Shown here: piece after piece, positions 1 through 63,400 of the stretch | Layout: each line of letters begins with the position of its first letter | How positions within the stretch are numbered: the stretch's first letter is position 1 | Assembly (NCBI GenBank): GCA_026936335.1 | Contig: JAPMXV010000042.1 | Coordinates: 496,001 to 560,000, forward strand | DNA from: Mantamonas sphyraenae STR306 | Taxonomy: Eukaryota > Protista > CRuMs | Direction: 5' to 3' | DNA: 64,000 bases | Translations under genes and position numbers: made by a program | Notes under the pieces: model-generated | Database searches by the model: none | Seen by the model: the letters and a program-made list of their open reading frames with translations, nothing else | Told to the model about the DNA's origin: nothing

Positions 1-1300
1 AGGGCAAAGAGGGGCCCTAGGCCTCGTGCGGTGACCAATCGCACGCAGGCGGTCTCCTGCGACGCACAAAAGGACAACACCTTCAGGGCGGCAGCCGAGA
101 CCGCCAGCCAGTGCTTCTTCACCTCACGTTTGGCCTGCGACTGTTTGCGCACCTTGTTGGCGTCCTTGAGAAGGCGGACCATCAGTTCGACGCCCTCGAG
201 TTCGACAAACGCCTCGACCAGGGCCGGTTCGAGCAGACACGAGTCCAGAATGTTGAAGAGGTTCATGAGAAACTCGGATTCCTCCTCATTGGCCGGCAGC
301 GTGGAGCGGTAGTGTGCAATGCGCAGGAGGACGGCGTCGAGGCCGCCCAAAGCGTGCCAGCTGCTCCTGTTGGCGCTGTGGTTCTGCATGAGGATGCATA
401 CGATTTCGCTTATGTACAAATGGTTTGCGGCAAACTCCTTTTGCTGGATACGTTGAAACAGATACTCCAGCAGGGCAGTTTCCTGACCAAAGAGCGCCGG
501 CGCCTCGTCGGGCCACGTTTCGACCGCCGTCTCGATCAACTCGAGGGTTGTGAATGCGCCCTGCTGCTCGTCGGTACTCTTTGTGTCGTCGAGGCGCTTG
601 AGATTGTCGACAAGCATGGGAAGGGCCTTGTTGGCGAGCATAGCCTGCCAAAGTGTCTCGATTGCCTCTGTTTGCTCGTCGTCGTTGTCGTCGCTCTGCA
701 GCAGCTCTTTGAGCAGGTCGACGACGGCAATGGCGATGTCTGTGTTTTCGTGTGCCAGCAGGGACAGCAGGGACTGCAACGAGCTCTGGATGAGGAGAGG
801 GTACAGCGTGGGCTTGGTGGAAAGTGCGCTCAGGTCCTTGATGCCCAGAAGCAGGTCGACTTCCGAGGCGATAAAGCTGAGGGAGTGTCAAGCGGAGGAA
901 CAGCGAACGCATACCGCAGTCAGTCGATGGAGGAGGGTGTGAGCAGGTGGGCACAGGGATGCAAGTGCGCGTTGTGCGGCGTGAGCACGTACCGTTGTGG
1001 CTCGTCGACAAACTTGGCGCGCTGTTCCAGGTTGGTGTTGATGCGTCGCTCGAGAGTGACCATGAGGACCTTGAGAGCAGGTGCATCGAGTTCCTGCACG
1101 TCTTCTGCCTCGTCCACAATGCGTTGGATTTCCTGCTGGTCAAGGCTGGCGCTGCTGTGTGCGCCAACACCGCCCACGTTGATGGCGTCAATAAACTCGT
1201 AGCCCAGGTCGTCCGTGTCGTCCCGCTTGCGCTTGCGAGCTCCAGACTCGCTCTGCATGGCGTCGTTGGACGGCTTGAAGTTGATTTCGCTGATGTCCAT
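1..1300 (-). CDS. CTNNBL1: Beta-catenin-like protein 1 (spliceosomal Prp19 complex), 3' end beyond window; intron 877-992
   Basis: ATG at 1300. Exon 1 (MDISEINF...KRKRDD...LERRINTNLEQRAKFVDEPQ) splices GTACGT..CTCAG into RFIASEVDL...SLLSLLAHENTDIAIAVVDLLKEL...NLKRLDD...EGVELMVRLLK, matching CTNNBL1 conserved blocks. Frame stays open to the window edge. Confidence 0.93.
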
Positions 1301-1450
1301 GGCTGCAGGAGAGGGCAGCTGGGAGTCTGAAAAGCGCTGCCCCCGCCAGCGTCCCACCAAGCACAAATCCTCCACAGCATATCTGATACAATGAGCCGCA
1401 GACCCGTTGTTGCATTGCAACCCGCACAATTTGCTCCGCTGGCCGAGCAC

Positions 1451-2449
1451 ATGCGCTATCGATTCCTTGGGAAGACCGGCCTGCAGGTGTCGGAGCTGGG
1501 GTTTGGGTCGTGGCTCACCATGGCGGTCAACACGGCACAGCAGGATACAGACACGTTGGTGGCAGCGTCATGGAACGCAGGCGTCAACTTGTTTGACACG
1601 GCCGAAGTGTACGCCAACGGCGAAGCGGAAACCCTGCTTGGGAACACCTTCCGTCGCCTGGGGCTGCCGCGCGATGAGATGGTCGTCACCACAAAGGTGT
1701 TCTGGGGGGGCAAGAAGCCAACACAGCGTGGTCTGTCGCGCAAACACGTCGTGGAAGGCACGTACGCGAGTCTGCGCCGGCTGCAGCTGGACCACGTCGA
1801 TTTGCTCTTTGCCCATCGGCCTGACCCGGACACGCCCATGGAAGAGACGGTGCGTGCGTTCAACTATCTCATCGAACAGGGTCATGCGCTGTACTGGGGC
1901 ACGTCGGAGTGGAGCGCGCAGCAACTGCAGGAAGCGCACGGCGTCTGCGATCGCCTGGGACTCATCAAGCCAGTCATGGAACAACCAGAGTACAATGTGT
2001 TCACACGCAAGCGAGTGGAGAGCGAGTATGCGCCATTGTTCGAGTCGGAAGCCGGATTGGGCCTGACCACCTGGTCGCCTCTGGCCAGCGGGCTTCTCAC
2101 TGGCAAGTACAACGACGGGATTCCTGAGGGATCCCGGCTGGCGCAAGGACGCGGAGTGCCCAAGCTACTGCGCAAGGAGCTGGAAAGCGAGGCGGGCCAG
2201 CACAAGCTGCAGCAGATCCGAGCGTTGGGGCAAGTTGCCTCGGCAGCTGGGCTGACGACAGGACAGCTGGCCATCAAGTGGTGCCTGGCGAACGAAAGGG
2301 TGTCCTCAGTGCTTCTGGGTGCCTCCAACATCAAGCAGCTTGGCGAGAACCTGGGCAGTGTGGTCCTTCCGGCACTGCAGCTCGAGGTGCTCGAGGCTGT
2401 GGAGCAGATCATGCGCAACAAGCCCAAAGACACTCCTTCATGGCGATGA
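1451..2449 (+). CDS. Aldo-keto reductase, voltage-gated K+ channel beta-subunit-like (AKR6); alternative in-frame ATG at 1391
   Basis: MRYRFLGKTGLQVSELGFGSW, FDTAEVYANG, GLSRKHVVEG, YWGTSEWSA, WSPLASGLLTGKY are KCNAB-type AKR motifs. Confidence 0.92.
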   Translation: MRYRFLGKTGLQVSELGFGSWLTMAVNTAQQDTDTLVAASWNAGVNLFDTAEVYANGEAETLLGNTFRRLGLPRDEMVVTTKVFWGGKKPTQRGLSRKHVVEGTYASLRRLQLDHVDLLFAHRPDPDTPMEETVRAFNYLIEQGHALYWGTSEWSAQQLQEAHGVCDRLGLIKPVMEQPEYNVFTRKRVESEYAPLFESEAGLGLTTWSPLASGLLTGKYNDGIPEGSRLAQGRGVPKLLRKELESEAGQHKLQQIRALGQVASAAGLTTGQLAIKWCLANERVSSVLLGASNIKQLGENLGSVVLPALQLEVLEAVEQIMRNKPKDTPSWR

Positions 2450-2566
2450 ACAACCGCGCGTGGCGTGGGCTTGTGGCACAAGCAAGACACGAAACCATTG
2501 CGTCGTGCGTTGGCAACCATGCGCGCGTCCACTCCCACAGAATCAACGAAACACGCGACCGAAGCA

Positions 2567-3771: not shown

Positions 3772-3833
3772 GCGAATGGACGATTTGTTGCGTTTGCTTT
3801 CATTCCCGCTCCCCCATCCATCACAAATGCCCT

Positions 3834-6375
3834 TCAGAACCCAGCAAAGCTTCCTGGTGCATCCGGAATAATCGGAGTCCCTCGCATGGAAAAGGCATTG
3901 TTTGCAGATTCTTCTTGCTCGTCCTGCCGCAGGTGTTCGTTTTCGATGCCACTCGTTGTCTGCTCAGCACCCGCCGCCTGCTCCTGCATGCGCCTGAGGG
4001 CCGCCGAGCTGCGCACAAGTGTGCTGCTAGAGGCAGCGGCCACTGTGCCTTGCGGAGGTGTGGCCAGATCCAGGAGTGCGGCGTCCTTTTCGTCATCGGT
4101 GAGGAGATCGCTGAGATTCAGCCGCTGCAGCATCTGCACCTTTTGCCTGCGGAAATCCAGATCTCCGTCCTGTGGAAACAGCGAGTGGAGGGCCGGAGGC
4201 GCACTGATGAGCGCCGAGGCGTGCATGCTACCCTCCACCACGGCAATGGCAGCCAGTGCGTCATCCAATTGCACCCGTTGGTGAAACATGAGCCGCGCGT
4301 GTGCCTCTGCAAGGCGCACCAGCGATTCGAGCAGTCGGATGGTGGTGCGCGCTGCGTTGCGGCCGTCTGCTTGGCGCTGCCGCTTGTAGTACGTCGACAG
4401 CACCAGCTCGCTCTCCGGGCTCATGTCCGGCTCAAGCGCACGAGCAAGTGCAATGTACGCCTTGACCTTGTCGATGCCCCACAGGCCGCCCTTGGCCTGC
4501 AGATCTTCCAGTGCCACGCCCCCCTCTTCTTCCTCGTCCATGTCATCCTTCTGTGTGCTTTCTCTCCGTCTCCTTCGGGCCCGAGCTTTCTCTGCACGGT
4601 CGTTGGGAGACTCTCCGCCACTGGATTGGCTGTGGCCGCCCTGCTGGTGCTCCCTCAGAATAAAGTCGCTCACGACCTTGTCCCAGTCACCATTCTGCGT
4701 GTCCACGAGGGTTAGCACGATGTCGAAGCGCGAGAGCAGAGGGCTGGCCATCGCAATATTCACACTAATGCTCTGCGTCGGATCGTACTTGCCGCGCGGG
4801 TTGCCGCTGGCCAGGATGCTGCAGCGTGTGTTGAGTTTGCACACGAGGCCGGCCTTGGCCACACTCAGGGTTTGCTGCTCCATCGCCTCGTGGATGGCTG
4901 TACGGTCGTGCTCGCGCATCTTGTCAAACTCGTCGATGCAGCACAGGCCTCCGTCTGCAAGCACGAGCGCACCAGCCTCAAGCATCCATTCGCCTCCGGT
5001 GTCCTTGACGGCTGTGACCGTCAAACCGGCCGTCGTCGTGCCCACACCCGTGGTATGCACTGCACGGTTGCTCAGCTTGTGGGCATACTTGAGGAACTGC
5101 GACTTGCCCGTGCCCGGGTCGCCCACAAGAAGCATATGAATCTCACCACGGATGGCCATGCCGCCTTTCGCGCGCCTGGGCACACCACCCAACAGAACCA
5201 GGATGACTCCCAGCTTGACGGTGTGCATGCCGTAGATCTGCGGACAGATGTTGCGCAGGATCATGTTGCGGCCTTCGATGGGCCGGTCTCTGTACTGCGC
5301 CCAAAACTCCTCAAACTCGGTGCGCAGCTCATCGGTTACGCGTGTGCTGATGTTCTCCTCATTGTGCACGCTGACACTGTTTGCCGAAATGGTGATTTCC
5401 ATGTCGCATCGCTCCTTGTCCTTGAGCGGGCGCCACCTGCGCAGAACCGTGCCGCACACCGTCACCTCGTCCCCGGCCTTGACTTTGTCCACCAGGTCAT
5501 CCATGAGGATGACAGCCATACTGCGTGGGATATTTCCCACCTTGAGCTTCTGTACATGTTCCTGGATCTTGATCTCCTGGTAGTCGCGGCAGCCGGTTTT
5601 GCCTTCCAGCGCCTCAAATTTGGTTGAGCGGCAAGGGTTGCTTGTCCCGCTCTTGGACGATGGGCACACCATGGGTTTGGGGATGGCGTTGTACTGCTCG
5701 ATGTCGGCCACAATCTCAAAAGGAAACTTGCACACGGCGCACTGGTATTGCCGTTTGTACTCCAGCATCTTGACCATTCCCGTGCGGATCACCGTCCCCG
5801 TGACGCTGATGATGTGTCCGATGTCTCTGCTGCGTGGCAGGGAGGTCTTGCTGATCTCAGGGCAATGTGGAAACGAGTGGAGACGCACGTGGACTTTCGT
5901 CTTGACCGTGGCTGTGTAACTTTCTTGGGCGTCCTTGATTTTCCCCTGCACCTTCACCAACGCCTCGTCAAAGATCGGCAGCAGATCCTGCGGGAACGAG
6001 AGAAGATGGGACCCCAGTGCCATGTTGACGTCGAGCAGGTCCAGAACACTGTGCAGCGCGGCCCAGAGTGTCAGAAGCGTGTTCCCGAGAACTGCGCGCC
6101 ATGGACGCGTCGCTCACCCGGCAACGCCAGCGGCCCACACATGCACACACACACACACACACACACACCAAACTCGCTGTGATTTGTTCGCCAAAGCTTC
6201 ACACAACAAATACTGAGCTCTATCTGAGTCCTACTTACTCAACCTCAATGCCATAGTGCGCCGAGTTGTCCCACTCTTCCATGATTCCCTTCAAGTCAGC
6301 AATGTGGTGGTCATACAGGTAGTCGGTGAACTGCTGGAGCCATGCATTGGGCAACTCATTGTCGTAGTGGTCCAT
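3834..6375 (-). CDS. MCM9: DNA helicase MCM9; exon 1 6239-6375, intron 6049-6238
   Basis: MCM box: GDPGTGKSQ, LEAGALVLADGGLCCIDEFDKM, AIHEAMEQQ, LLSRFD, RTTIRLLESLVRLAEAHARL. Exon 1 (MDHYDNE...SAHYGIEV) joins DVLDLLDVNMALG and resembles the MCM9 N-terminus. Confidence 0.9.
6144..6168. repeat. (CA)n microsatellite in the MCM9 intron
   Basis: About 12 CA units read directly. Confidence 0.9.
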
Positions 6376-6478
6376 CAGGCTCAGGCCGACTTGGGTGGAC
6401 ATGCGGAAGATGGGTTGATTTGTTGGTGGTTGCTGGGCCCTCCGGACTGTTCGCGTTGCACTTCACAACCACGCCCTG

Positions 6479-8944: not shown

Positions 8945-9059
8945 GTCGAAGCGCGGGGAGCGCACTTCGGCAAGCTCGTGGAGCTGGAGCGAGCGCAACG
9001 AAGTTGAGCTTGGTTTGCCACTGCCCCGCCTCATCCAGACAAAAGCAAAAAGCAAAAAA

Positions 9060-10355
9060 ATGTATGTTTGGTCGAGCGTGTGAGAGAGGCCAAAGCCATA
9101 GGGCACCGCGCGCAGGTGTATGTATATGCACCTGTGTGTATGTTGTGTGTCTTTGTGTGCCTGTATGCGTGTATGGAGCGCAAGAAAGTGGTTTCGACGG
9201 ACGGCTCGCTGACCCTCATTTCTGGCCTTTGGCTCGCACTCGAAAACCTCTCAGGGGACGCCGTATGTTGACCTGAGACGTATGCCGTGTGCACTGCGTG
9301 CATGTGTGGTGTGTCGAGCATGGCATCCGCCGCTCGTTTCCCGGAAGTTCATCCGCACAGCCGGAAAACGCAGCCGGAAAAGCGCAACGCTGAACGGCGC
9401 AAGCGCATGCAGAAAACGCAATTTGCGCTGGCCTGCCGTTCAGCGCCACACACACGCGCAGCCACACATGCAAAGCCCACTTTCCCATCACTCCATGCCA
9501 TTCCTTGCACACCCACGCCATGACGCTGACCCTCGCTCTCTGTGTGTGACACCGTAGGCCCCGCTCGCTGCTACCGCTATTGCAAGAAGTGAGTTGCCTT
9601 TTTTTTTTTTCGAGGCGCCGAGGCCGCGCGAGTTTGGTTCGTGCGCGAGGGAGCCGCAAGACGTGGATGCAGAGTGCAGAGGATGTTGAGGAGAACATGT
9701 GTGCTCACACCGCGGATCCTCGCATCATCACAGCAAGCCGTACATCAAGTCGCGCTACTGCCGTGGTGTGCCGGACGCCAAGATCCGTATCTACGATCTG
9801 GGCAACAAGAAGGCTTCGGTGACGGAGTTCCCGCTCACTGTGCACCTCGTGTCGTGGGAGAAGGAGCAGATCTCGTCGGAGGCTCTTGAGGCCGCGCGTA
9901 TCTGTGCCAACAAGTACATCACCACCAAGGTGGGCAAGCTGGGCTTCCACATGCGTGTGCGCGTGCACCCGTTCCACGTGCTGCGCATCAACAAGATGCT
10001 TTCGTGCGCCGGTGCCGATCGTCTGCAGACCGGTATGCGCCACGCCTACGGCAAGCCGCAGGGTCTCGTGGCCCGCGTGAACATTGGCCAGATCCTGCTG
10101 TCCGTCCGCACCAAGGACGCCCACAAGGAGCACGTGATCGAGGCTTTCCGCCGCGCCAAGTTCAAGTTCCCCGGCCGCCAGAAGGTTGCCGTGTCCCAGA
10201 AGTGGGGCTTCACCAAGTACACTCGTGCCGAGTTCAAGAAGCTCATGCGTGAGGGCAAGATGAAGACCCTGGGTGTGCACGCCGAGGAGATCAGCCGCCA
10301 CGGCCGTCTGCCGCTTATGACCGACGGTCTGGACCTCAGCGAGATCTCTGCCTAA
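9060..10355 (+). CDS. RPL10: 60S ribosomal protein L10 (uL16); coding exons 9060-9061, 9255-9262, 9558-9588, 9734-10355
   Basis: Splicing three GT-AG introns gives AT|G GGA CGC C|GC CCC GCT CGC TGC TAC CGC TAT TGC AAG AA|C AAG CCG = [16 protein letters not shown], followed by [18 protein letters not shown]...[22 protein letters not shown]. Confidence 0.97.
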
Positions 10356-14500: not shown

Positions 14501-17238
14501 GAACGCCAAGAAGCGCAGGAGCTAATTCTGCCCCTGGAGATCAAGACGGGCAAGCAGACGACTGTGAACCACCACCGCGCACAGGCCACTCTCTACACAT
14601 TGATGCTGGCAGAGCGCAACGGCGTGCCCGTGCCCCTCTCGCTGATGTTTTTCCCCAAAGCACGGCACGCGTTTGGCGTGATTGCTCACCCGTTTGAACT
14701 GCAGGCGCTAATCCAGGTGCGCAACAAGCTGGCAATGCACATTCAACAGTACGGCAAGTGGTACGAGTGCACCGGGCTTCGACACGAAAACGACGCCGAA
14801 GGCGACCACAGCGGAAGCAGCGGCAGTAGCACAGCAAGCAGCCCCGGAGACAGCACAAGCATCGATATCGAGGACATGGGCATCTCCAAGGATGACCTCA
14901 GCGGACGTGTGCGTGAGCATGTGCGCAGGCGGCTCGGTGGTCGCCAGCAGATTCACACACCGGGTATCGACGAACTGTCTGTGGTGCCAGAGGACGTCGT
15001 GGAGCGTGCGCACAAGTACATGCCTCCGATGATTCGCAACGAACGCACTTGCCGCTCCTGTTCTCAGGCCGACAACTGCATGACCTTCCACAAACTGCTC
15101 GAAGGGGGAGACGCCGGGACGGCTGGCGCGGGCGATCTGTTCAAAACCATCACAGGGCACATGAGCAAGCGGGACGCCATCTTTCTCATGCACTGGGACT
15201 TTCTGCTGGAGCTCGAGCTGCGTGAGGCAATGGTGCGGGACCGCGAGATCTGGCTCACGGATTCGCGCCGCCGTGACTCTTGCGCTGGCTCCATGGTTAT
15301 CACCAGCGAAGAAGGGGTTGGAGAAGGCAAGTACCGGTATATATTTCTCAAAATCAGAGGACGCGGTTGGCCACAGAAAGCAGCAGCAGCAGCAGTAGCA
15401 GCAGCAGCAGCAGTGGCGCTCGCAGTGGCGCACGAACGACGACTGAAACTGAGGCACAGCAACTGCGTCCACGGCCGCGGTCGCGCACCGAATCGCTGAT
15501 GTCAATGGAAAGCAATGCGTCTGAAGGGAACGGCGAGGCAAAGATTGCAAAGGGCGACTACGTTGTCATCAGCATGGAGGAGGGGATGACGGGTGCAGCA
15601 ACGGGGTTTGTGATTGACGTCAGTCGGTCCAAGGGCACGTATGTGGTTCAGGCAGAAACCCGGTTGCGTGTTCCGGATGTGTACAGTGTGGCCTCTCCGT
15701 TCCAGTGCAAGTGGCGCCTGGACAAGGGCGAGTTTGTCAAGATGTTCAAGAAAGGCCGAGCCAACGTGTACGCTGCCCTGGCGCCGAGAAAGGAGGCCAC
15801 AAGTATGCGGTTGCGATCGTGGATTGTGTACCAGGAGGAGCCGCAGTACGAGAGTGAGGAGTGGCTAGAACAGAATTGCGGCCACGTGTTGGACGAATTG
15901 CGTGGGCGATTGAACCCGGATCAGGAGGAAGCAGTCGCAACGGTGCTGCGTGCGCGTGACTATGCACTCATTCTGGGCATGCCAGGCACGGGCAAGACCA
16001 CAACCATTGCCATGCTTGTCAAGGCGCTTGTGAAGCTGGGCAAACGCGTACTGGTGAGTTCGTACACCCACTCTGCTGTGGACAACGTGCTGGTTAAGAT
16101 CGGCGAAGAGGGCATCGACTATCTGCGTTTGGGCAAGATGGCCTCGATTCAGGAGGAGGTGCGGCATAACACGGTGAAGGGGAAAGGCTGTCGCAACGTG
16201 GCCGAATTGCAGGATCTGGTGGAGAACGTGATGGTGGTGGGCTGCACAACCAGCAGTACGGGCGACCACGTGCTGCAAAAGCTTCGCTTCGACTATTGCA
16301 TCGTGGATGAGGCGAGCCAGTGCACGCTGCCGTCGTGCCTGGGCCCTCTTCGCTTTGCCGATCGCTTCGTGCTTGTGGGAGATCACAACCAGCTGCCTCC
16401 GCTGGTGCGTAGCCAGACAGCACGCAATCTTGGCCTGACGGTGAGCTTGTTCAAATTTCTGAGCGAACGGCATCCACACAGCGTCGTGCAGTTGTGCTAT
16501 CAGTACCGGATGACGCGCAACGTCATGCTTGTGTCCAACACCCTTGTGTACGACCACAAGCTCCGCTGCGGCACAGAAGAGGTGGCCAACTCCAAGCTGG
16601 AGCTGCCCATGCCGGAAAAGATGCTTGAGGATCGGCTGGGCAACACCGACCATTGGTTGTCCGAGGTACTCCAGCCCGAACACACGGTGATGTTTCTGAA
16701 CACAGACCGTGTGCCTGCGTGGGAAGAGGGCCGAGAAAACAGGGTGGAGGCAGTGCTTGTGTCGCACATTGTGCGCGCTCTGGTGGCGTGTGGGCTCGGG
16801 TGCAAGGACATCGGCGTCATTTCGCCGTTCCGCGCACAGTTGCAGGTGATTCAGTATCTGCTGCCCGAGCGCAAGTACCATGGCCTGAATGTGTACACCG
16901 TCGACAGATTCCAGGGCAAAGACAAGGAATGCGTGATTGTGAGCCTCGTGCGCAGCAACGAGCACGAAGGCGTGGGAGATCTGCTCAAAGACTGGAGACG
17001 CGTCAACGTGGCTTTTACGCGTGCCAAGAAGAAGCTCATCGTGATTGGGTCCATGCGTACACTGAACCCTCAGGTGGAGGAGGGTCAAGAGAAGCACAGC
17101 ATCGCCAAGTTCCTGGAGTTGGTGAACCAGCACGGGTGGAGTATGGACCTCCCAGAGGAAGCGCACAGGGACTTTGTGGACGATGATATGGGAGTTTCGC
17201 AGAGTCAGACGAGTGGGATGGTCGTGGAAGAAGGGTGA
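11536..17238 (+). CDS. DNA2: DNA2 helicase/nuclease with long low-complexity N-terminus; probable intron 11629-11836 (otherwise start at 11855); three apparent frameshifts (~12952, ~14398, ~15347)
   Basis: Fe-S Cys pattern (GCLRQSVL...TCRSCSQADNC), nuclease EENFWSPMLGIKGKVD...PLEIKTGK, SF1B helicase GMPGTGKTTT, DEASQ, VGDHNQLPP, TVDRFQG, NVAFTRAK. The gene is spread over four overlapping ORFs. Confidence 0.92.
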
Positions 17239-17239
17239 T

Positions 17240-20200
17240 TCATTGCGCGATCAGCAATGGCTCCTCCATGCTTCGCATCCTCACCGACACAGACGAATGC
17301 AAGTGTTCCCGGTGGGTCTCTCCAGTCTTGTGTGCGTACCAGGTCGCCATCACGTGTCTCCGCAGCCTCGTCATGCCTGCAGAGAGATTCTTGGATGCCA
17401 TGGCCAGCAGAAGAGCAAATCCCACGACGATCGTCACCACAACCACACCAAGGGCGACAACATCCACTGTGCCTGCGTCAAAGTGTGAGCGACTCAGTGT
17501 CACCGCTGTGCCCGTGACAAACACAGTGAGGAGCGTGAACAGGCTGAGCGTTTCCAGCCTGTTGTCCAGATCGCGCACAAATGGCCTCGTGCGCTGGTGG
17601 TACCAGATGGAGACAAGCAGCGTCAGAAACAAGACAATGAAAAACGTTATCTGCGAGTAGAAAGGCACGGCAGTGACCAGCACGGTGACGACGATGCGGC
17701 GTGCGATCACAACTAGCTCGTACGTCGCCTCCTCACGTCGATACGATCGATATAGGAAACCAAACGCGGTCTGAGCCCAGGCTTGGTCCATTTCATCGGT
17801 CTTGTGCAAGTGCCAAAGGACAAGGCTGTCGGCAACGGGCAGCAATGCGCCGACACACACCAGCAGCATCCATGCGACTGCCTGCACTCCAAGCAGCGTC
17901 CCGTCCCTTGATCCTGGTCCTGCACACAAGATAAAGGGGTACTGGTTCAGGAAGAGCCATGGTGAGCCGGCACCCGTGTTGGAGTCTGTGCACATCAGGA
18001 AACTGAGCGACTGCAACAGAATCGGCCCATACGCGACATGAAGGGTGAACAGGACCAATCCAACCAATCTGTGCTTGCCACGCACACCCATGGATGCCTC
18101 TTCAGCTTCCTGGTCCACTGCCAACTGTGTGGCAGCCTCCACAGCCCCCGGCAGCATCTTCGGCAGTCTCCACCACCTCACCTCTGTGGCCACGATTGGC
18201 TCGCCACCTTGACACCTTTTTCCACACCACTGTGGAAGTGACACCAAGCACCACCAGAGGCACCACCAGTGTTGTGCTGGCCACAAACTCGCCATTCCAA
18301 CGTTCTGTGAATCCGCTCGGGGCCACAAACAGACACTGAAGCGTCGACACGCTCAGGTTCACCGAAGATGCCATCTGCGTCACGAATCCCATGATGCTGC
18401 TCATCGATTCACGCAATCCGGATGCAGGCGACGATTCCGCAACGCTGTCCAGCCGCTGCACACGGTGCAACGCCGTTGTCAACGAGATCGACGACCGCTC
18501 GATCGTGGCCAGGATCTGCCAGAAGAAGAGGACGATCTTGAGAGTGGCCGAGTCTCCGCCTTGGTACAGCCTGCGTGAATTGACCAACCAGACAAACAGG
18601 GAGAAAAGGAGAACGTACAGTGCCATCGTGAGCGCTACTGTCCCGGGCGATGGGCAAGACTCGCACACGCGAGCTGTCTTGTAGAATCCGATGTCGCATT
18701 CGCTGCACAGTCGTGATCCATCGCGATAGCCGGGTGCACACGACAGGCTGCGGCTTTTGTGCCCATCAGCGTTGTCCTGCTTCACCTCGACACAGGCTTG
18801 TGCCACCGGACATGGAAGGACGGCAAGAAAGGTCGAGGTGTCGTTGGGTTGCGTGACGACACGACAGCCTCGGATGCCTCCTGCAGTGCACTCGCAATCA
18901 GAAAACTCCTCCGGGCATCGAAGGCATTGCTGGGCAAACCCGTAAAATCGGTCGGTGCACGCACACTGCTCCAACCAATTGTCAGGCTCGTAGAAAAAGA
19001 GCAACGGTAGGCCGTCGCTGCGGGAGAAGGTGCGGCATGACACGTTGCCGAACAAACGGTGGCTCGACCGCTTTGCCTTGAGGAACGTGGTGTCACCCAA
19101 GGACAGACGCATGGACGTGTTTGTCACATCCACGTACCACAATGAGCTGCTTTCTCTCATGGACGACGGAAAGCCGCCGTGGATGGCCGAGTTGTGGAGA
19201 TCGAGCCGCTGGAGACGATCCAGCGTGGGCCAGGAACCGATAGAGCCAGACAGGCTCGTGTTGAACAGCCTGAGTTGTTCGATCTGTGTCAATTGCAGAG
19301 CAGTAACATCTCCGAGCAGGTTTGGGTTGTCCGAGAGGTCCAGACTACGCAGGGGGGGCTGTGTGATGCTGAAGACCAACTCCTTGATGCGGTTGCCAGA
19401 CGCAGACAGATGCACGAGATTCGGCGGCAGGGCGTCCCAGTTGACATCGTCGTGGATGAGGTTGTCATCCACGCGAAGCGTGGACAGCAGACTGACCTGC
19501 GCTACGGCGTCCATCACAGCAGTGAGCTTGTTGTGCGAGACATCCAGCGTCGCAAGCTGCTCCATCTGCACCAACGACGGCAAGGTGTCGATGTAATTGG
19601 ACGAGAGATCCACCAAGGTGATCCCCTGTGCGGCATTCAGGCCTGGTGGGAACACGCGGAGGCTGTTGTTCGCGGCGCTGAAGAAGCGCAGGCGTGGAAC
19701 CTCAAACACAGCAGCTGGAATGGATGTCAGCGCGTTGTTGTCCACTACCAGACTGCTCAGATTGGTCAATCCGCCGATTGTGCTCGGGAGAGCCTCCAAC
19801 AGATTGTCGGACACGTCCAGGGAAAAGCACCCTTTCAGATTCCCCACAGTCGGCGGGAGACTGACCAACTTGTTCGAGCTCACTTCCAAACGCAACAGGT
19901 TGGTGAGATTTCCGATGCATGCGGGAAGCGAATGCAATTGATTCGCGTCCGCCAGGAGAAGAATGAGGTTCTTGCAGCCGCAAATGGAACCAGGGAGCCC
20001 AGTCAGCTTGTTGTTGCTGAGAAAGGCAAATCGGAGTTCCTGGAGCTGATCAAGGGATTGCGGGAGGTCCATGAGCTTGTTTCCGTTCATCTTGAGGGTG
20101 CGCAGCTTCGCTAGCCGCACCAGGCTCTGGGGCAACAGCGATAGCGCATTGCCAGCCAGATCGAGGGTTGTGAGATCCAGCCAATGTTCCAGAAAGGTGG

Positions 20201-24295: not shown

Positions 24296-24341
24296 AGTGT
24301 CGTGGGACGGGAACTCGATTGCAGCCAACAAAACTCTCGTC

Positions 24342-25250
24342 ATGGTATGTTTGCACAGCTCATTGTGTGGGATGATGGAATGGGGGATGAATGGGTTGCG
24401 TTGGCACCATGTTGTGGTGGAGGGTCCTCCACCAGTGCAAGAGGAGGAGGCATGTTTGTGCAGCAAGGCGGACTCGATGCTGACGGCAGTACGGACATCA
24501 CAACCCGCTCGGGACAACCGGGTGGACGTCCAAATACCATCGCACACAGGCAAATAGGCTGATTGCCAACCTCTTGGTCATGGGGGTGCAGGTTCTGTCG
24601 AGGGCATTCGCCGAGGCGGTGCGGCAAGGCCGAATGCGTACGTGGGGTAGAGCAGCGTGGTGATTGAGGGATATGAGATGTATGGCAGAACGGTGTCCAC
24701 GGACGGATTGCTCACACTGGCCTCTGTATGGCTCGTGATGGCCTGCGGGGAAATGGAGCGCAGAAGGGCAGGGCGGAGGACGCGGGGCGCTGACGCTGAA
24801 CGAGGCCAAGATGATCCTCGGGCTGACAGAGGAGAGCGTAACCCGAAAGGCCATTGAGAATGTACGTTTGGGTCGAGTTGGCGTGTGTGTGTGCGAGGGC
24901 CATAAGCACAGCAGGCGGAGGAAATTCTGCCGCAAGGTCGACGCGAATACATGGCTGGCCGTGGCATGCAATCTGAAGCCTGAAATGACACTGACACAGA
25001 GCACACGGCGGGGCCACAGGCCTTTGAACACCATTTTAAGCGCAACGACGTCGAGGGTGGCTCTGTGTACCTTCTGGCCAAGTTTAGCAATGCGCGGGAG
25101 GTGTTGCTCAACTCCATCGACGCGGATGGAAACCCTATCGCCGATGGAAGCAGCAAGAATGGCCATGACGACGGTGACAGCAGCAGCAGCAGCAGCAGCA
25201 GCAGTGCATCGGATGGTGGTGGTAACGGTGGTGGTGGCAACGGCCACTGA
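24342..25250 (+). CDS. PAM16: Mitochondrial import motor subunit Pam16/Tim16; coding exons 24342-24344, 24550-24637, 24764-24861, 25020-25250
   Basis: Spliced product M|ANRLIANLLVMGVQVLSRAFAEAVRQ...GALTLNEAKMILGL...AFEHHFKRNDVEGGSVYLLAKFSNARE matches the Pam16 J-like domain (GGSxYL). All junctions are GT-AG and in phase. Confidence 0.9.
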
Positions 25251-25299: not shown

Positions 25300-25878
25300 T
25301 TATTGAGATGCCGCAGAGCGAGCTCCGTGCTCACTGATGACCCTCTGCAGATCTGTGGTCTCACTCTCTTCCCATGCCACCACGGCGTTGGCGAGAGCCA
25401 GACCGGCCACGGCGAGGCCGGCACCGACGGGTGCGTCTGTGTGCACAAGGAGCGCAGGAAGGATGCATACGAGGCAGGTTGCCGGGTAGGATGTGAGTAT
25501 TGGGCGATTGTGGGCCAAAGAGGCCTCTCCATACGTCAGCGTGCAGCCGTGCGGAGCCGCGAGAGGGCCTTTGCGGTGAAGCGGTCCGGCGGCGGGCGAC
25601 GTGCTGGACGCGCTCCTGCATACACACAACACACACACACACACACACGAGGCACAGATGAGTCGTGATATGGCACAGACGCACGGCGTTGTGTGTGTGT
25701 GTTTAACCACGCCGCCCCCTACACGCTGTGTGTGTGTTGCCAGGCCAGGAAAGGAACCACATCACACATGTGTGGCTTTTAACTCACTGGCCATCGGCGG
25801 CAGACGGCGCACGGCATTGCTGAACACATGGACTCCCACGCCCATGCCAGCTCCCACAATGGATGAAACAACAGGCAT
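25300..25878 (-). CDS. NDUFC2: Complex I accessory subunit B14.5b/NDUFC2-like; intron 25437-25787
   Basis: Spliced MPVVSSIVGAGMGVGVHVFSNAVRRLPPMANAPVGAGLAVAGLALANAVVAWEESETTDL aligns without gaps to plant-type B14.5b as recalled (GA.LG.G...YSNALRKLP.M...N....W). Two TM helices. Confidence 0.8.
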
Positions 25879-27176: not shown

Positions 27177-27195
27177 AATTGAACAAACCATCGTT

Positions 27196-28801: not shown

Positions 28802-28850
28802 CGTGTTTGTTTTTGCCTCACCTGCGCCCTACAGGCTGTCATCACTACCC

Positions 28851-38618: not shown

Positions 38619-38658
<40 letters not shown>

Positions 38659-38950: not shown

Positions 38951-38964
38951 TTCCCGGCTTTTTG

Positions 38965-41245: not shown

Positions 41246-41343
41246 CAGGAGGAAAGATGTGTGTGTGGGAAGGATGGGGGAGCCCCCAGGAAAACAAAGT
41301 GCAGCAATTTGCCCTGCCGCGTCCAATCTGTCCCTCGTCCTGA

Positions 41344-41931: not shown

Positions 41932-42034
41932 TCGCGGCCAACCTCCGCCTCCACGCAATGTACAGCAGTTCTCCTCTTTTCATGTTGCGAATCGCCACTC
42001 CAAAGTCTTTCATGCCACACGTGGCTTTTGCAGG

Positions 42035-43183: not shown

Positions 43184-43233
43184 CGCAGACAATTGCGCAA
43201 GTGCAGAAGGACAGTACAGACCATTTTTTTGCT

Positions 43234-54820: not shown

Positions 54821-55023
54821 GGTTTCGTGAGTGGTGCGGCTTACAGTAGTTTCGTTTTTGTGCAGCCCATTGGGCACAGGTGACCAAGATGCAGTGTGCT
54901 GCAAAGGGGGGAATGGAAACAGAGAGGCAGTGTTGCCAAGCATTGATGTGTATTCTGTTTGCCATTTGCTGAGGAATGCTGCCCGACCGTTCCGGTCAGG
55001 GGAAACACAGTGTGCTGCCGACT

Positions 55024-55061
55024 GTGTGTGCGTGTGCGTGTGCGTGTGTGTGTGTGTGTGT
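55024..55061. repeat. (TG)n/(TGTGCG)n microsatellite between the small Tim and WDR47
   Basis: Read directly. Confidence 0.85.
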
Positions 55062-55110
55062 AGTTGTGTGTGGTTTGATCCACCGATGCAGCGGGTGATG
55101 TACAGCGACC

Positions 55111-57242: not shown

Positions 57243-57277
57243 AGCAGCAACCAATGGAGACTTGTGACTGCATGGTT

Positions 57278-57856
57278 TTACCTCCACACATCCTCCCACA
57301 TCTTTTGCACATACTCCCATGCGTTTTGGACGTCGATCATGGTCAATGGGATGGATGGAAGCTCGTCCAGCGAGACGTTTGCAAGGGGAAGGTCAAGATC
57401 AAAGACCTGGGCGGCTGCAAGCAGAGCCAGAGGACCCAGAATGGTCGTGCGCCGCACAAACTTGTATCGACGTGCTGATTTCTCCATGGCACGCAGTTGG
57501 GTGCCGTTGACCGTCTTGATGCCGACGGTGAGGCAGCGCGGGGAAAAGTCGGACGTCGTGACAAAGATGCCTCGCGAGGGCGAGATGCCGTTGAGAAGAA
57601 GCACTTGCTTGAACTTGGCCACGTCGTGGAAGGGTACTTTGTTTGCATAGTTCTTGCATTCCACGTAGTGTCTCCGGAAGACGCCGAACTGGACATCGAT
57701 CTGCGAGCGGTTGCCAAACTTGTCGCACAGCGTCACGTCGTGCTTGACATTCCACTTGCCCATGTTGCGATACATCCGCAGGACTCGTCGCTCAAGTTGA
57801 AGGCCACGCGCACGTGCGCGCTCGCCTTGCTGGCGCCGGGCGCGTTTCGAGGACAT
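57278..57856 (-). CDS. Mrr-like (type IV restriction endonuclease fold) PD-(D/E)xK nuclease with C-terminal hydrophobic segment
   Basis: GLQLERRV...SQIDV...YVECKNY..KVP..DVAKF...RGIFVTTSDFS...I..VNG..L is the Mrr_cat motif order. Confidence 0.8.
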   Translation of the reverse strand: MSSKRARRQQGERARARGLQLERRVLRMYRNMGKWNVKHDVTLCDKFGNRSQIDVQFGVFRRHYVECKNYANKVPFHDVAKFKQVLLLNGISPSRGIFVTTSDFSPRCLTVGIKTVNGTQLRAMEKSARRYKFVRRTTILGPLALLAAAQVFDLDLPLANVSLDELPSIPLTMIDVQNAWEYVQKMWEDVWR

Positions 57857-57901
57857 CGCTGTGTGCCCCAGCGCACGCATCCAAACCTCACGGTCACGTC
57901 C

Positions 57902-58721
57902 ATGGACGACAACGAGCTTCGCCTCGTCGTTGCCGCGCGCAAACGTAAACGGGACTCGATCATGAGTGACGAGGAGCTTGAGGAGCACTTTGCCAGATTG
58001 GTTCAGGCCGAGGAGGCAAAGCGACAGCGTGTGGAGGATACGGGACTCGTACAGTTGCATATGAGCCGCAAGGAGGTTGGTTATGCAGATTAGAGGGGTT
58101 TTTGGCGTCATGCACGGTATCTGACACAGAAGCGAGCAGTTGGACGACAGGATAGCTCGGTTCGTTCGGCAAAAACGCGACATGGTGGATGAAAGCAACC
58201 GGGTGGAGTTTCTCGAGCAAGTGAGCGAACGTATGGCCCATTGTGCACGTGTGGACGCGAAGCGTGTGGATCGCAAGCAGCAAGTGCGCATGTACGCGGC
58301 GGAAAGCGCTTCCGAGGCTGTGAGCGAGCGTCTGCAACGGCTGGAGGAGCACGTGAACCTGACTGCCGTGCCCAAAGATGTTTATGCGCGACTTGCCGCT
58401 CTCGAGGACCGTGTTCTGAGGATTGAGGAGCAGGCAGCGGTGTTGATCACCACGTCGGCAAAGTACTACGCGCGGCAGCACAGCAGGGCGCTGTTGCTGG
58501 TGGACCGCAACAGCGAGGCATCCCAAGAATACGCGGAGCAAGTGAGAGCACGCAGTGAGGCGGAAACCATGCGCTTGAGTGACATTCCTGTGATCCGTGC
58601 CGCCCAAAGCGGCACACCGAACACTTTGCAACTCGACGCACGCATCCAGGAGCTTCAGAGCCAGCTACGCCAGTCCTCCTCACACACCCACACCCACATG
58701 CCAGAAAATGCATCAGGCTGA
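57902..58721 (+). CDS. MBIP: MBIP-like protein (ATAC complex subunit); intron 58076-58139
   Basis: VQLHMSRKE|LDDRIARFVRQKRDMVDESNRVEF...CARVDA...VSERLQRLEEHV...VPKDVYARLAALEDRVLRIE matches MBIP conserved blocks. Confidence 0.82.
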
Positions 58722-59801: not shown

Positions 59802-59901
59802 ATACGTGGCAGCCAGAGAGGTGGAAATGCGACTGTTTGCTTTTCGATGGGGGGCGTGGCGCAGCTGCGCACTTCATGGCAAATGCCCATGCACAGCGGG
59901 G

Positions 59902-60444: not shown

Positions 60445-60451
60445 CGGCCTT

Positions 60452-63400
60452 TCATTCAGCTGCCTCCGCTCGCGGTGAAGCCGGGCCGCTTCCCTCTGTG
60501 TCTGTCGTGGATCCACTGTCCATTCCGTCATCGTCATGATCCACGTCGTCCATGTCATCCTCACCTGCTGCTTCGGCAATTGTGGCCAACGTTGCCAACG
60601 CAGAGGGGAGAATGGGCGACGCTGTCGAGCTGTGCTGCGCGTCGTCCTCGATCGCATCCAAGTCGTCACTGTAGGTGGAGGCACTCGAAGCAGCGCGATT
60701 CCTGCTGATCTCTGGGCCAGGTGACATCCCCAGTTGGGTCCGCAGCACCTGGTTGTCCTTCTGCAAGGCATTGAGCTTGGCGATATACCGGGTTTCGAGC
60801 TTGTTTCGGGCCTTGAGGATAGCTCGGTCACGCTCCTCTTCTAGTCCCTGGCGCACTTTTCGCATGTGTTGCTGATTGGCAAGGTCCCATAGCCTCTTGT
60901 CGTCCCTCCTCTGCGCTTCTAACGCGTGGCGTAGATCGTCAAGCTCAGCTGCATGTGCTTTGGCTATTCGCTGCAGCGACGCCTCATGCTCTTGTTCAAG
61001 CGCTTGATGTCGTTCACTGTGTTCGCTTAGTGTCCTCTCCAGCCGATCTTCGAGGCCCTTGGAGGTGGCAGTGGCATCTGCGATCTGATCCCGGAACATC
61101 GTGCGGATTTGCTGCTGCCGGGTGCGATGCTGCTCCTTCTCAGCTTCCAGCTTCGCGTGCATGTGTCTCTCCTGATTTTCCAGCATGTATCGTTGCAGAT
61201 GATTGAGCAGGATCCCTTGGGTGCGCTGAAACAAGTCGAGCTTGCGTTGAGTCTGCTCCGCAGTGCGTTGAGCTGCTTTTACGCTCTTCTGAAGCTTGCG
61301 TGTCTTCTTTTGGGCAGATTTGATCTGTTCCATGGATTGAGCCTGCGCGCTTGTCCTTGACTCCAACTCACGAGTCGTCTGTGAAAGCGTGCTCTCCAAC
61401 TTCTCGAGTTGCACTTGTTTCTGCACGCGATCCAGTTCAGCTCCCTTGAGTTCTTGTTTCAGTGTCTTGTTCCTTGCTTCCTGAGTTTCCAGTTGCTGCT
61501 TGAGACTGGTTGCCTCTTGGTTGGTTTGCTCCACTGCCTTTTCCAAGTCCCCCTTCAGCTTCCTCACCTCCTCTTCCAGCTGCCCTTTCACCCTCATTGC
61601 CTCCTTCACCTTCTCCTCCATCTCCGCCACCATCTCTCCCTGCCCCTGTTTCCTGGCCTCCACCTCCTCCTTCAGCTTCTTCACCTCTTCTTCCAGCTTC
61701 TCCTTCTCTCCCATCGCCTCCTTCACCTTCTCTTCCATCTCCGCCACCATCTCTCCCTGCCCCTGTTTCCTGGCTTCCACCTCCTCCTTCAGCTTCTTCA
61801 CCTCCTCTTCCACCTGCCCTTTCACCCTCATTGCCTCCTTCACCTTCTCCTCCATCTCCGCCACCAACTCCCCCTGCCCCTGTTTCCTGTCCTCCACCTC
61901 CTCCTTCAGCTTCTTCACCTCCTCTTCCAGCTGCCCCTTCTCTCCCATCGCCTCCTTCACCTTCTCTTCCATCTCCGCCACCATCTCCCCCTGCCCCTGT
62001 TTCCTGTCCTCCACCTCCTCCTTCAGCTTCTTCACCTCCTCTTCCAGCTTCTCCTTCTCTCCCATCGCCTCCTTCACCTTCTCTTCCATCTCCGCCACCA
62101 TCTCTCCCTGCCCCTGTTTCCTGGCTTCCACCTCCTCCTTCAGCTTCCTCACCTCTTCTTCCAGCTTCTCCTTCTCTCCCATCGCCTCCTTCACCTTCTC
62201 TTCCATCTCCGCCACCATCTCTCCCTGCCCCTGTTTCCTGGCTTCCACCTCCTCCTTCAGCTTCTTCACCTCCTCTTCCAGCTTCTCCTTCTCTCCCATC
62301 GCCTCCTTCACCTTCTCTTCCATCTCCGCCACCATCTCTCCCTGCCCCTGTTTCCTGGCTTCCACCTCCTCCTTCAGCTTCTTCACCTCTTCTTCCAGCT
62401 TCTCCTTCTCTCCCATCGCCTCCTTCACCTTCTCTTCCATCTCCGCCACCATCTCCCCCTGCCCCTGTTTCCTGGCCTCCACCTCCCCCTTCAGCTTCTT
62501 CACCTCCTCTTCCAGCTGCCCTTTCACCCTCATTGCCTCCTTCACCTTCTCCTCCATCTCCGCCACCATCTCTCCCTGCCCCTGTTTCCTGGCTTCCACC
62601 TCCTCCTTCAGCTTCTTCACCTCCTCTTCCAGCTGCCCCTTCTCTCCCACCACCTCCTTCACCTTCTCTTCCATCTCCGCCACCAACTCCCCCTGCCCCT
62701 GTTTCCTGTCCTCCACCTCCTCCTTCAGCTTCCTCACCTCCTCTTCCAGCTGCCCCTTCTCCCTCATTGCCTCCTTCACCTTCTCTTCCATCTCCGCCAC
62801 CATCTCTCCCTGCCCCTGTTTCCTGGCTTCCACCTCCTCCTTCAGCTTCCTCACCTCTTCTTCCAGCCGCTCCTTCTCCTTCCCCTCACGTTCACTCATC
62901 ATGACTTGCCCATCTATCGCCATACGCAACTCGGCTTCCAATCGTCGCCTCGTCCCCTGCTCCTCTTCCAGCAGCGTTTCCACCGCAGCCTTTTCCGCTC
63001 GAATCTTTTCCATCTCCCCTTTTAGCTCCCCTTCAGACTCTGCTGCCATCATTTCTCGTGCTTGAAGCTTCGTCTTTGCGTCATCCACCTTCATCTTCAT
63101 CCGTTGCAGCTCCCCAGCCTGCTCCTCCGCCCGAGCTCGCCGTCGGCTCTCCCGTTCTTCCATCTCCCGTGTCACCTTCTCCTGCTCCGCTACTTTCTTC
63201 TGCGTCTCTCTCAACGCTCCCTCTGCATCATGGCGCTTCCTCACCTCCTCTTGCATTTGGCCCAGCAGCGTGGCCAGTTCTTCGTTCAACTGCTTCTCTA
63301 TCTCCTGTGTCGACCCCAGACGGCCTTCTACCTCCTGCAGCCTGTTTTCCATCTCTTTACGAGCCATGTTCGATTCACGTTGCACCCTTGCAACCTCCTC

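Follow-up and report, generated by a model that had tools for sequence, protein, structure and literature searches.

The window analysed here, a stretch of 64,000 nt from the genome of Mantamonas sphyraenae STR306, raises the question of how neighbouring genes are expressed when most of them lie only ~0-150 bases apart. The initial annotation of this DNA had proposed that its intergenic spacers are shorter than its introns, and that either promoters and terminators lie inside neighbouring genes or tandem genes are co-transcribed, possibly in the manner of nematode SL2 operons.

The spacers were re-derived with a purpose-built six-state-class HMM that combines a 3-periodic coding model with learned splice sites on both strands and whose training set was the window together with 200 kb of contigs C1 and C10; statistics on gaps and introns are drawn from a genome sample of 264 kb on three contigs. 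The HMM cannot model overlapping genes and made at least two wrong merges. It predicted 32 genes in the window and matched exactly 20 of the 30 gaps listed earlier, including divergent gaps of 150, 73, 71, 95 and 45 nt, tandem gaps of 117, 98, 100 and 290 nt, and the convergent gaps of 62, 281, 1, 49, 19, 53, 50, 86 and 35 nt. Where the two readings disagreed, the initial annotation was usually right, and domain or coding evidence also backs the extreme gaps of 46, 49, 14, 7, 1 and -9 nt. The very short spacers claimed across the window were thus borne out. The junctions and related features are as follows (window coordinates; strand where both genes share it; HMM where that model made the same call):

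1301..1450, divergent ATG-to-ATG spacer, 150 nt (HMM, Pfam Aldo_ket_red, coding score of the extension)
2450..2566, + strand, tandem spacer from aldo-keto reductase stop to DNase II ATG, 117 nt, with a C/A-rich leader at its end (HMM, Pfam)
3772..3833, convergent spacer between DNase II and MCM, 62 nt (HMM)
9035..9059, head-to-head spacer between carboxypeptidase ATG (9034, -) and RPL10 start (9060), 25 nt
9062..9733, + strand, RPL10 5' region with introns 9062-9254 (193 nt), 9263-9557 (295 nt) and 9589-9733 (145 nt)
17239, convergent spacer between Dna2 stop (17236-17238) and LRR-receptor stop (17240-17242), 1 nt (HMM)
24296..24341, + strand, tandem spacer from kinase stop to PAM16 ATG, 46 nt, ending in CAGCCAACAAAACTCTCGTC
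24345..24549, + strand, PAM16 intron 1, 205 nt, directly 3' of an ATG-only first exon
27177..27195, convergent spacer, 19 nt, the TGA of the + strand gene lying inside AATGAATGAA (HMM)
28802..28850, - strand, tandem spacer from Nup160 stop (28851) to CEP44-like ATG (28801), 49 nt, ending in GGCAAAAACAAACACG
38951..38964, head-to-head spacer between AP5Z1-like ATG (38950, -) and Frizzled-like receptor ATG (38965, +), 14 nt
41246..41343, + strand, tandem spacer, 98 nt (HMM)
41932..42034, + strand, tandem spacer to the first ATG of a BCNT-domain gene, 103 nt
43184..43233, convergent spacer between the BCNT gene and a condensin II subunit, 50 nt (HMM)
54821..55110, - strand, spacer downstream of a small Tim gene, 290 nt, among the few long ones (HMM)
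58713..58721, convergent coding overlap of the + strand ORF 58182-58721 with the TauE stop (58713-58715, -), 9 nt
59802..59901, - strand, tandem spacer from deaminase stop to TauE ATG, 100 nt (HMM)
60445..60456, - strand, tandem junction of a coiled-coil gene and the deaminase, with a 7-nt gap (60445-60451) and the TGA at 60452-60454

With its first base (24550), exon 2 of PAM16 is already at position 2 of the Pfam Pam16 profile, and the start of this gene is therefore placed at the lone ATG 24342-24344, 46 nt past the kinase stop. The gap between Nup160 and the CEP44-like gene is put at 49 nt because only 6 residues lie between the start at ATG 28801 and the CEP44 domain, and because the two genes are parted by a stop in frame; the HMM wrongly fused them into a single gene. 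In the Frizzled-like receptor, a signal peptide and an Fz domain beginning at residue 40 require the ATG at 38965, hence the 14-nt gap, and coding scores concur. The coding score of ORF 58182-58721 remains positive through to its stop, so that the ORF overlaps by 9 nt the stop of its TauE partner, itself a Pfam match. The first deaminase ATG, and with it the 7-nt gap, is favoured because the domain alignment reaches upstream of the second ATG, use of which would widen the gap to 25 nt. In RPL10, the last exon aligns with solved uL16 chains from residue 15 (E = 9e-90), and a start codon split as AT/G with an 8-nt microexon fits for that reason; the introns flank exons of 8 and 31 nt, and each of them is longer than the spacer upstream of the gene. 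That spacer would measure 115 nt if the carboxypeptidase used its second Met (8944). Similarly, a start of the aldo-keto reductase at 1391 in place of 1451 would reduce the spacer at 1301..1450 to 90 nt, and the HMM prefers ATG 42077 to the first ATG (42035) of the BCNT gene, for a spacer of 145 nt.

The published assembly (25.06 Mb, 78 contigs, GC 59.19%) is annotated with 9,416 genes of mean length 2,282 bp (PMC10492846), figures from which non-genic DNA, with repeats counted, works out at a mean of ~380 bp per gene; the assembly analysed here has 25,061,354 bases in 78 contigs and a GC content of ~59%. According to the HMM, the 264-kb sample consists of ~86% coding sequence, ~9% introns (8.6%) and ~5.6% spacers, and both composition and gap values were stable when the intergenic prior was varied from 1/60 to 1/3000. 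Median gaps were ~105 nt for tandem pairs (104-114 across settings), ~95 nt for divergent pairs (90-97) and 80 nt for convergent pairs, the shortest class. The classes are roughly additive, in that the tandem median of 104-114 nt can be set against half the sum of the divergent (90-97) and convergent (80) medians, which fits a need of ~40-50 nt for each gene end on its own. Between about one in four and one in three junctions has a spacer of -9 to ~60 nt. When the lengths of spacers and introns were compared over the 264 kb, the median was lower for all gaps (99 nt) than for introns (~118 nt), but the distributions overlap (Mann-Whitney p = 0.08), so that the proposed shortness of spacers relative to introns holds for the medians only, and the gaps are about intron-sized or slightly shorter. 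As to the related idea that introns tolerate microsatellites, dinucleotide repeats do occur in predicted introns at 6136-6168, 25622-25648 and 38622-38657, but a (TG)25 repeat (55023-55072) also occupies the 290-nt spacer downstream of the small Tim gene.

Signals at both ends of the genes bear on how such spacers might work. At the 3' side, AATGAA occurs 15 times within 60 nt past stop codons, where 0.6 would be expected, and the broader motif (G)AATGA(A) peaks from -20 to +60 around the stop, on the sense strand only, with a density of 8.8 per kb, while coding sequence and introns have ~1 per kb (~eightfold enrichment). It is carried by 43% of genes, compared with 6.5% of random coding 85-mers, and in strict form by 12 of the 32 window genes; tandem and convergent gaps are enriched for it, and divergent gaps have none. 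The motif often includes the TGA stop itself, as with the LRR-receptor TGA, which falls within AATGAA, and that of the coiled-coil gene (AATGAA at 60451-60456, - strand); AA precedes TGA in 14 of 94 TGA stops (4.2% expected). The DNase II/MCM spacer holds two opposed copies, GAATGG at 3774 (+) and GAATGA at 3800-3805 (-). We regard (G)AATGA(A) as a candidate polyadenylation signal, and its position at or just past the stop would, in that event, make for very short 3'UTRs. At the 5' side, the C/A-rich leader said to precede most ATGs is real, with a C+A content of 0.586 at -35 to -1 versus 0.496 in random 35-mers (p = 3e-7), but modest, reaching at least 60% C+A in about half of the genes. A search for a promoter motif in the divergent gaps found none.

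The reading that we favour, and consider probable though far from assured, is that of an extremely gene-dense nuclear genome in which each gene forms its own RNA polymerase II unit and yields a monocistronic, polyadenylated mRNA with miniature UTRs. The 3' ends would probably be set by (G)AATGA(A), located anywhere from 5 nt short of the stop codon's end to ~60 nt past it, for 3'UTRs of a few tens of nucleotides, and the start codons would be preceded by a C/A-rich leader of ~20-40 nt with little T or G. In a tandem spacer of the typical size, ~100 nt, there would then be just enough room for one 3' end and one 5' leader, with the core promoter overlapping the 3' end of the neighbouring gene. 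At junctions from -9 to ~60 nt the transcription units would physically overlap: convergent mRNAs might have mutually complementary 3' ends, head-to-head genes might each start within the other's 5' region, and a downstream tandem gene might start within the last codons of the gene upstream. Spacers could contract almost to nothing, given that a neighbouring gene can harbour their signals, and introns would have a floor of ~60-120 nt, since a donor (GTRNGT), a CTGAC branch site, a CA-rich tract and a CAG acceptor are needed. Judged by the geometry of the sequence, neighbouring transcripts at the shortest junctions (-9, 1, 7 and 14 nt) must overlap, or signals must sit inside the neighbour; the sense-strand GAATG motifs nearest to the 3' side of the kinase stop (24378 and 24389) in fact lie within PAM16 intron 1. 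To this extent the proposal of promoters and terminators inside neighbours is upheld, but a typical gap of ~100 nt could also accommodate a 5' leader together with a 3'UTR that is very short, the outcome that the initial annotation had named as contrary to its view.

An alternative that we consider unlikely is that a minority of genes, the tightest tandem pairs, are expressed as mature dicistronic mRNAs with translation of the second ORF by reinitiation or internal entry, the remaining genome being monocistronic; polycistronic loci reported in green algae provide a model. The 7-nt (coiled-coil/deaminase) and 46-nt (kinase/PAM16) spacers are backed by domains, and the former might still be a dicistron in spite of the length of its upstream coding sequence (>1,100 codons). 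Upstream ORFs as long as these (>1,100 and ~550 codons) make leaky scanning impossible and reinitiation inefficient in eukaryotic translation, and the AATGAA on the stop of the coiled-coil gene predicts cleavage near the downstream ATG. The longest contig of the published transcriptome, at 32 kb, might accommodate such messages, but the assembly from poly(A)-selected RNA amounts to about one contig per gene, its 9,255 contigs averaging 2.2 kb and the 9,416 genes 2.28 kb (PMC10492846).

More doubtful still is general co-transcription of tandem genes, with precursors resolved by 3' cleavage and polyadenylation together with SL trans-splicing of the SL2 type or some other 5'-end step. The window's tandem gaps (7-117 nt) and the candidate 3' signal on the upstream genes of tandem pairs recall nematode SL2 operons and kinetoplastid units, in which consecutive genes on one strand are separated by ~100 nt and every gene has a 3'-end signal (PMC7668243, PMC11708010); moreover, the published genome paper reports no search for a spliced leader (PMC10492846). 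All the sequence tests of this alternative nevertheless spoke against it. Genes in tandem are no closer together than divergent or convergent pairs, and in the 264-kb sample their gaps follow a unimodal distribution, with no distinct ~100-nt class of the kind the initial annotation had perceived, nor any short-gap class set against long non-operon gaps. Same-strand adjacencies (45 of 113, 40%) fall below random expectation and form no co-oriented clusters. An acceptor signature before the ATGs is likewise missing: a branch-plus-acceptor pattern marks 44% of intron ends and 17% of random coding 100-mers, but 13% of the 100-nt stretches that precede tandem-downstream genes, and AG is depleted at -60 to -1 of start codons. 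The leader composition is alike in tandem-downstream and divergent genes (p = 0.27), the latter of which must have promoters of their own. No match to Rfam SL1 or SL2 was found in the whole assembly, a weak test given that spliced leaders are lineage-specific, and the ratio of about one contig per gene in the poly(A)+ assembly (PMC10492846) also argues against operons. Finally, it is very improbable that the short gaps are gene-model errors (starts placed too far upstream or spurious ORFs in GC-rich DNA) concealing ordinary spacers, for although several starts are ambiguous by 18-120 nt, as in the aldo-keto reductase, carboxypeptidase and BCNT genes, and the HMM itself made wrong merges, the convergent gaps rest only on stops of Pfam-confirmed ORFs, the extreme starts match profile coordinates, a 50-fold higher cost of opening a gene barely shifts the medians, and the annotation leaves only the ~380 bp per gene derived above.

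Packed monocistronic units can be compared with several known systems. Ostreococcus tauri, a free-living picoalga, combines very dense coding with ~200-bp spacers; the medians in the Mantamonas sample (~80-115 nt) appear to be even smaller, and the Mantamonas genome, at twice the size, belongs to an unrelated, deep-branching heterotrophic lineage (CRuMs). The mini-UTRs predicted here resemble those of Giardia, Trichomonas and Entamoeba, which have very short 5' leaders and a polyadenylation signal at or just past the stop that sometimes includes it. Those organisms have genomes that are rich in AT or almost devoid of introns, and their signal sequences are different, whereas Mantamonas has the candidate signal (G)AATGA(A), a GC content of 59% and introns. 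For Entamoeba, start sites and poly(A) sites have been mapped (PMC8874941).

Spacers of ~100 bp or less are found likewise in the microsporidia Antonospora and Encephalitozoon and in cryptophyte and chlorarachniophyte nucleomorphs, where promoters and terminators are displaced into adjacent genes and transcripts enter neighbours (PMC4815078, PMC6009652). The microsporidia live as parasites inside cells and the nucleomorphs are relict nuclei; genes are few in both, and introns are tiny or scarce. Mantamonas, in which overlapping transcripts are a prediction from the genome sequence, is a free-living bacterivore with ~9,400 genes (mean 2.3 kb) and introns of ~60-350 nt. Plasmodiophora brassicae is, unlike Mantamonas, an obligate plant parasite in Rhizaria, and reportedly has GH3 and SABATH methyltransferase genes, which the Mantamonas genome lacks. 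The P. brassicae genome of ~24-25 Mb and GC 59% has reduced intergenic space, with most distances given only as <800 bp, and RNA-seq examples of overlapping UTRs; in other compact eukaryotic genomes, too, UTRs overlap and promoters and terminators are displaced into neighbours (PMC4815078). The architecture of Mantamonas, with each gene probably its own unit, looks like an extreme packing of an ordinary nuclear genome, that is, like a compacted eukaryotic genome.

The short-gap packing of genes in the window is real and, seemingly, genome-wide. Our estimates are based on a purpose-written gene finder (HMM) that reads both strands at the nucleotide level. It represents coding sequence by a second-order model with 3-periodicity and splice sites by learned matrices for donors and acceptors, and it holds introns to a minimum length; the window and 100 kb from each of contigs 1 and 10 of the M. 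sphyraenae assembly served for training, by Viterbi iteration. In this 264-kb sample (three contigs, ~1% of the genome), the HMM assigns ~86% of the DNA to coding sequence, 8.6% to introns and 5.6% to spacers. Median gaps are 104-114 nt between tandem neighbours (stop-to-ATG), 90-97 nt between divergent ones (ATG-to-ATG) and 80 nt between convergent ones (stop-to-stop). All gaps together, 113 junctions on the three contigs, have a median of 99 nt, within the ~100-200 bp or less that is expected of spacers in compact genomes. A 50-fold change of the gene-opening prior barely shifts the gap and intron values.

As judged from composition and profile matches, the genes packed in this way are ordinary eukaryotic genes. 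The window (contig 42, 496001-560000) has a GC content of 59%, and its long ORFs are composed like real coding sequence (GC1 > GC2, GC3 ~0.72). Pfam matches include aldo-keto reductase, DNase II, MCM, cytosolic carboxypeptidase, Dna2, LRR receptors, a kinase, Nup160, a condensin II subunit, FKBP, TauE, small Tims, CEP44, PAM16, a Frizzled-domain receptor and a deaminase; an Rfam search and a tRNA scan of the 64-kb window gave no matches. The whole assembly (GCA_026936335.1) holds 25,061,354 bases in 78 contigs, and the published FALCON assembly is described as 25.06 Mb in 78 primary contigs with a GC content of 59.19% (PMC10492846). Searches of the assembly for a true GH3 and for a SABATH methyltransferase found neither, which sets this genome apart from that of Plasmodiophora brassicae, equal to it in size and GC content. 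From the published gene set of 9,416 genes with a mean length of 2,282 bp, we compute that non-genic DNA, with repeats counted in, amounts to a mean of ~380 bp per gene; the genome paper reports gene number and length, and the terms "intergenic" and "UTR" are absent from its text (PMC10492846). The following loci were also recorded in the course of the gene survey:

Window 57278-57856, minus strand: intronless gene with an Mrr-type restriction-endonuclease fold (Pfam Mrr_cat, E = 4.7e-7), among housekeeping genes and with flanking spacers of 35 and 45 nt.
Window 60452 to at least 63946, minus strand: coiled-coil gene with no Pfam match.
Window 61541-62878, in the coiled-coil gene: 11.4 tandem copies of a 117-nt (39-codon) unit, 92% identity.
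Contig 54 of the assembly, ~75,800-118,700: partial, weak GH3-profile matches (profile positions 75-123) on one strand at 12 places, every ~3.57 kb; they mark a tandem array, with at least a dozen members, either of large repeat units or of paralogous genes.

Within the window the HMM predicted 32 genes and reproduced exactly 20 of the 30 gap sizes of the initial annotation. Disagreements between the two were resolved by hand and with profile searches, spliced models being examined exon by exon, and at six checked places the earlier models proved the better ones. The first exon of PAM16 consists of the ATG only, which sets the gap behind the kinase gene at 46 nt (the 26-residue exon, too short as a query, had no match in the PDB, and the Pfam profile was used instead). 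The CEP44-like gene is separate from the Nup160 gene, from which it lies 49 nt away. The deaminase domain extends to the first ATG of its gene, 7 nt from the coiled-coil gene, and the Frizzled-like receptor requires the ATG at 38965, 14 nt from the ATG of the AP5Z1-like gene. The convergent coding overlap of 9 nt at 58713-58721 withstood curation, as did the RPL10 model with its AT|G start, 8-nt microexon and introns of 193, 295 and 145 nt. At another tight junction, on which the HMM and the initial annotation agree, the stops of Dna2 and an LRR receptor are 1 nt apart. All four of the extreme junctions became shorter once curated, which indicates that HMM gaps tend to be too long. The HMM gene models contain errors, and some genes are merged or truncated. 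One HMM "gene" on contig 1 (87389-90565 in the coordinates of the contig 1 sample) has tRNA-like sequence just past one predicted stop, with T-arms of, for example, the GGTTCGAATCC type on either strand, and is probably a false coding model across a tRNA locus.

The spacers had initially been described as shorter than the introns. This holds for the medians in the 264-kb sample (99 nt for gaps versus 117-118 nt for introns), but the two distributions overlap (Mann-Whitney p = 0.08), and the better wording is that spacers equal introns in shortness or fall somewhat below them. Introns probably stay longer because their own signals are needed inside them, whereas the signals of a spacer can be embedded in its neighbours. 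Predicted introns of the sample end in a common layout, in which a branch-like CTGAC(A) motif is followed by a CA-rich tract and then by CAG, as in these two examples:

Window 24345-24549: predicted intron with this 3'-end layout.
Window 9062-9254: predicted intron with this 3'-end layout.

CTGAC occurs 38 times in the last 50 nt of introns (5.6 expected), at a median of 34 nt ahead of the acceptor. Donors follow GTRNGT; GTATGT, considered as a general donor, is not enriched. Introns are predicted by the HMM in ~65% of genes, some of these predictions being possibly false, whereas the published genes are mostly mono-exonic (PMC10492846). Introns of the sample are concentrated towards the 5' end, 54% of them falling within the first 30% of the coding sequence, and a first intron tends to exceed later ones in length (median 133 nt versus 108 nt); speculatively, this bias would fit a regulatory role. 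A short tandem duplication in intron 2 of RPL10 (window 9358-9386) consists of two copies of CAGCCGGAAAAGCG adjoining CCGGAAGT; these contain ETS-like GGAA cores and lie in a long 5' intron of a gene that is almost without upstream spacer.

A by-product of the spacer analysis is a candidate polyadenylation signal, (G)AATGA(A), that seems to be coupled to the stop codon. In a k-mer screen of the 264-kb sample, AATGAA was found 15 times in the 60 nt after stops, where 0.6 occurrences were expected, and GAATGA, GGAATG and ATGAAT were likewise enriched downstream of stops. Counted from the end of the stop codon, the enrichment spans -20 to +60 and is confined to the sense strand; the motif is a conserved sense-strand element that lies within tens of nt of the stop and sometimes includes it. 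GAATG or AATGA reaches a density of 8.8 per kb at -5 to +80, versus ~1 per kb in coding sequence and introns, and is present in 43% of genes versus 6.5% of random coding 85-mers. Of all stop codons in the sample 84% are TGA, and among 94 such stops 14 form part of AATGA (4.2% expected), which suggests a coupling between stop-codon choice and the candidate signal. Examples from the window are:

17240-17245: TGA stop in AATGA(A).
27171-27177: TGA stop in AATGA(A).
36073-36078: TGA stop in AATGA(A).
60451-60456: TGA stop in AATGA(A).

A signal for 3'-end formation would be expected in tandem and convergent gaps and not in divergent ones, and this is the distribution seen: the motif dominates the former two and is absent from the latter. 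In tandem gaps that carry it, the motif lies at a median of 18 nt past the stop and ~95 nt ahead of the next ATG, a spacing that would fit monocistronic units with mini-UTRs. The stop-proximal position of the motif is shared with genomes of the Giardia or Trichomonas type, in which such a signal is accompanied by mini-UTRs; for Mantamonas the short UTRs are deduced. The first motif lies beyond the gap in only 3 of 112 genes of the HMM sample. For the kinase gene, the nearest candidate 3' motifs are found inside intron 1 of PAM16. The stop of the coiled-coil gene, 7 nt before the deaminase ATG, is embedded in AATGAA, as is that of the LRR receptor.

At the other end of the genes, the C/A-rich leader that had been noted before most ATGs is evident in the sample as a C+A content of 0.586 versus 0.496 over positions -35 to -1 (p = 3e-7), T and G being correspondingly poor. 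Leader composition is alike in tandem-downstream and divergent genes. No clear over-represented promoter motif was found when the divergent gaps of the 264-kb sample were screened; TTGGCGC shows a weak excess there (6 versus 1.0), which is not enough for a promoter claim. The E2F-like TTSGCGCS was discarded as gene-specific promoter evidence in gaps, with 11 matches in the window versus 14.7 expected.

To account for such gaps, the initial annotation had offered two possibilities: that promoters and terminators lie inside neighbouring genes, or that tandem genes are co-transcribed, perhaps in operons of the nematode SL2 type. The analogy with SL2 operons is contradicted at the level of gaps, gene orientation, acceptors and transcript contigs, and operons are unlikely on this evidence. 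Nematode SL2-type operons are co-oriented clusters with ~100-nt spacers that are shorter than those outside, whereas in the Mantamonas sample tandem junctions are not tighter than divergent or convergent ones, and the tandem lengths form one broad unimodal distribution. Same-strand adjacencies account for 45 of 113 junctions, 60% of junctions switch strand, and the longest same-strand run in the three regions is 4 genes, unlike kinetoplastid-type units with tens of genes per strand and rare switches. Nor do the ATGs show the trans-splice acceptor signature that SL2-type operons would require: a branch-plus-YAG pattern precedes 17% of ATGs and 13% of tandem-downstream ones, versus 17% in random coding sequence and 44% at intron ends, and AG is depleted at -60 to -1 before starts. 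Rfam SL1 and SL2 gave no match in the whole assembly, a weak test. In the published transcriptome, poly(A)-selected RNA was assembled into 9,255 contigs with a mean of 2.2 kb, versus 9,416 genes with a mean of 2.28 kb, and taking one ORF per transcriptome contig still recovers 85.5% of BUSCOs (PMC10492846). Approximately one contig per gene, together with this recovery, argues against a general use of mature polycistronic mRNAs, but not against processed precursors. We regard it as improbable that some or many same-strand neighbours 7-50 nt apart are co-transcribed and expressed without a spliced leader, whether as mature dicistrons or through cleavage at the stop-embedded AAUGAA and use of the downstream fragment. 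If this were true, nuclear genes would undergo a form of polycistronic expression in a free-living organism of a deep-branching lineage. Mantamonas is a member of that lineage, the CRuMs, which branch near the base of Amorphea.

The first of the two possibilities is the likely one. At the junctions of -9, 1, 7 and 14 nt, geometry makes embedded signals or transcript overlap unavoidable. We propose an organization in which every gene end would need ~40-50 nt of dedicated DNA. The 80 nt of the median convergent gap would then be about twice the 3' requirement, the divergent ~95 nt about twice the 5' requirement, and the tandem median about the sum of a 3' and a 5' requirement plus ~20 nt. The units would be monocistronic, their 3'UTRs a few tens of nt and their leaders ~20-40 nt long, and core promoters would overlap the 3' end of the neighbour. 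With its stop inside AATGAA and 1 nt from the stop of Dna2, the LRR-receptor mRNA would be cleaved within the last codons of Dna2. Transcription start sites, poly(A) sites and transcript overlap are here inferred from junction geometry and motif statistics.

Microsporidia, nucleomorphs and, in part, Plasmodiophora have overlapping transcription units or signals placed in neighbouring genes (PMC4815078), and the pattern deduced here from the Mantamonas sequence matches this type. Mantamonas is a new, unusually clean free-living case of an already known kind of genome compaction. If the sample is representative, a free-living bacterivore fits ~9,400 long genes into its genome at a median spacing of ~100 nt, a density otherwise linked to parasites and nucleomorphs, and intergenic compaction of this degree would need neither parasitism, gene loss nor intron loss. 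Annotation pipelines will merge or truncate genes in such a genome, as the HMM did, and (G)AATGA(A) would help in annotating them, should it be confirmed. The organism would also offer a tractable system for the study of how Pol II promoters and 3'-end signals function with almost no dedicated DNA, and of how widespread sense-antisense overlap between neighbouring genes is tolerated.
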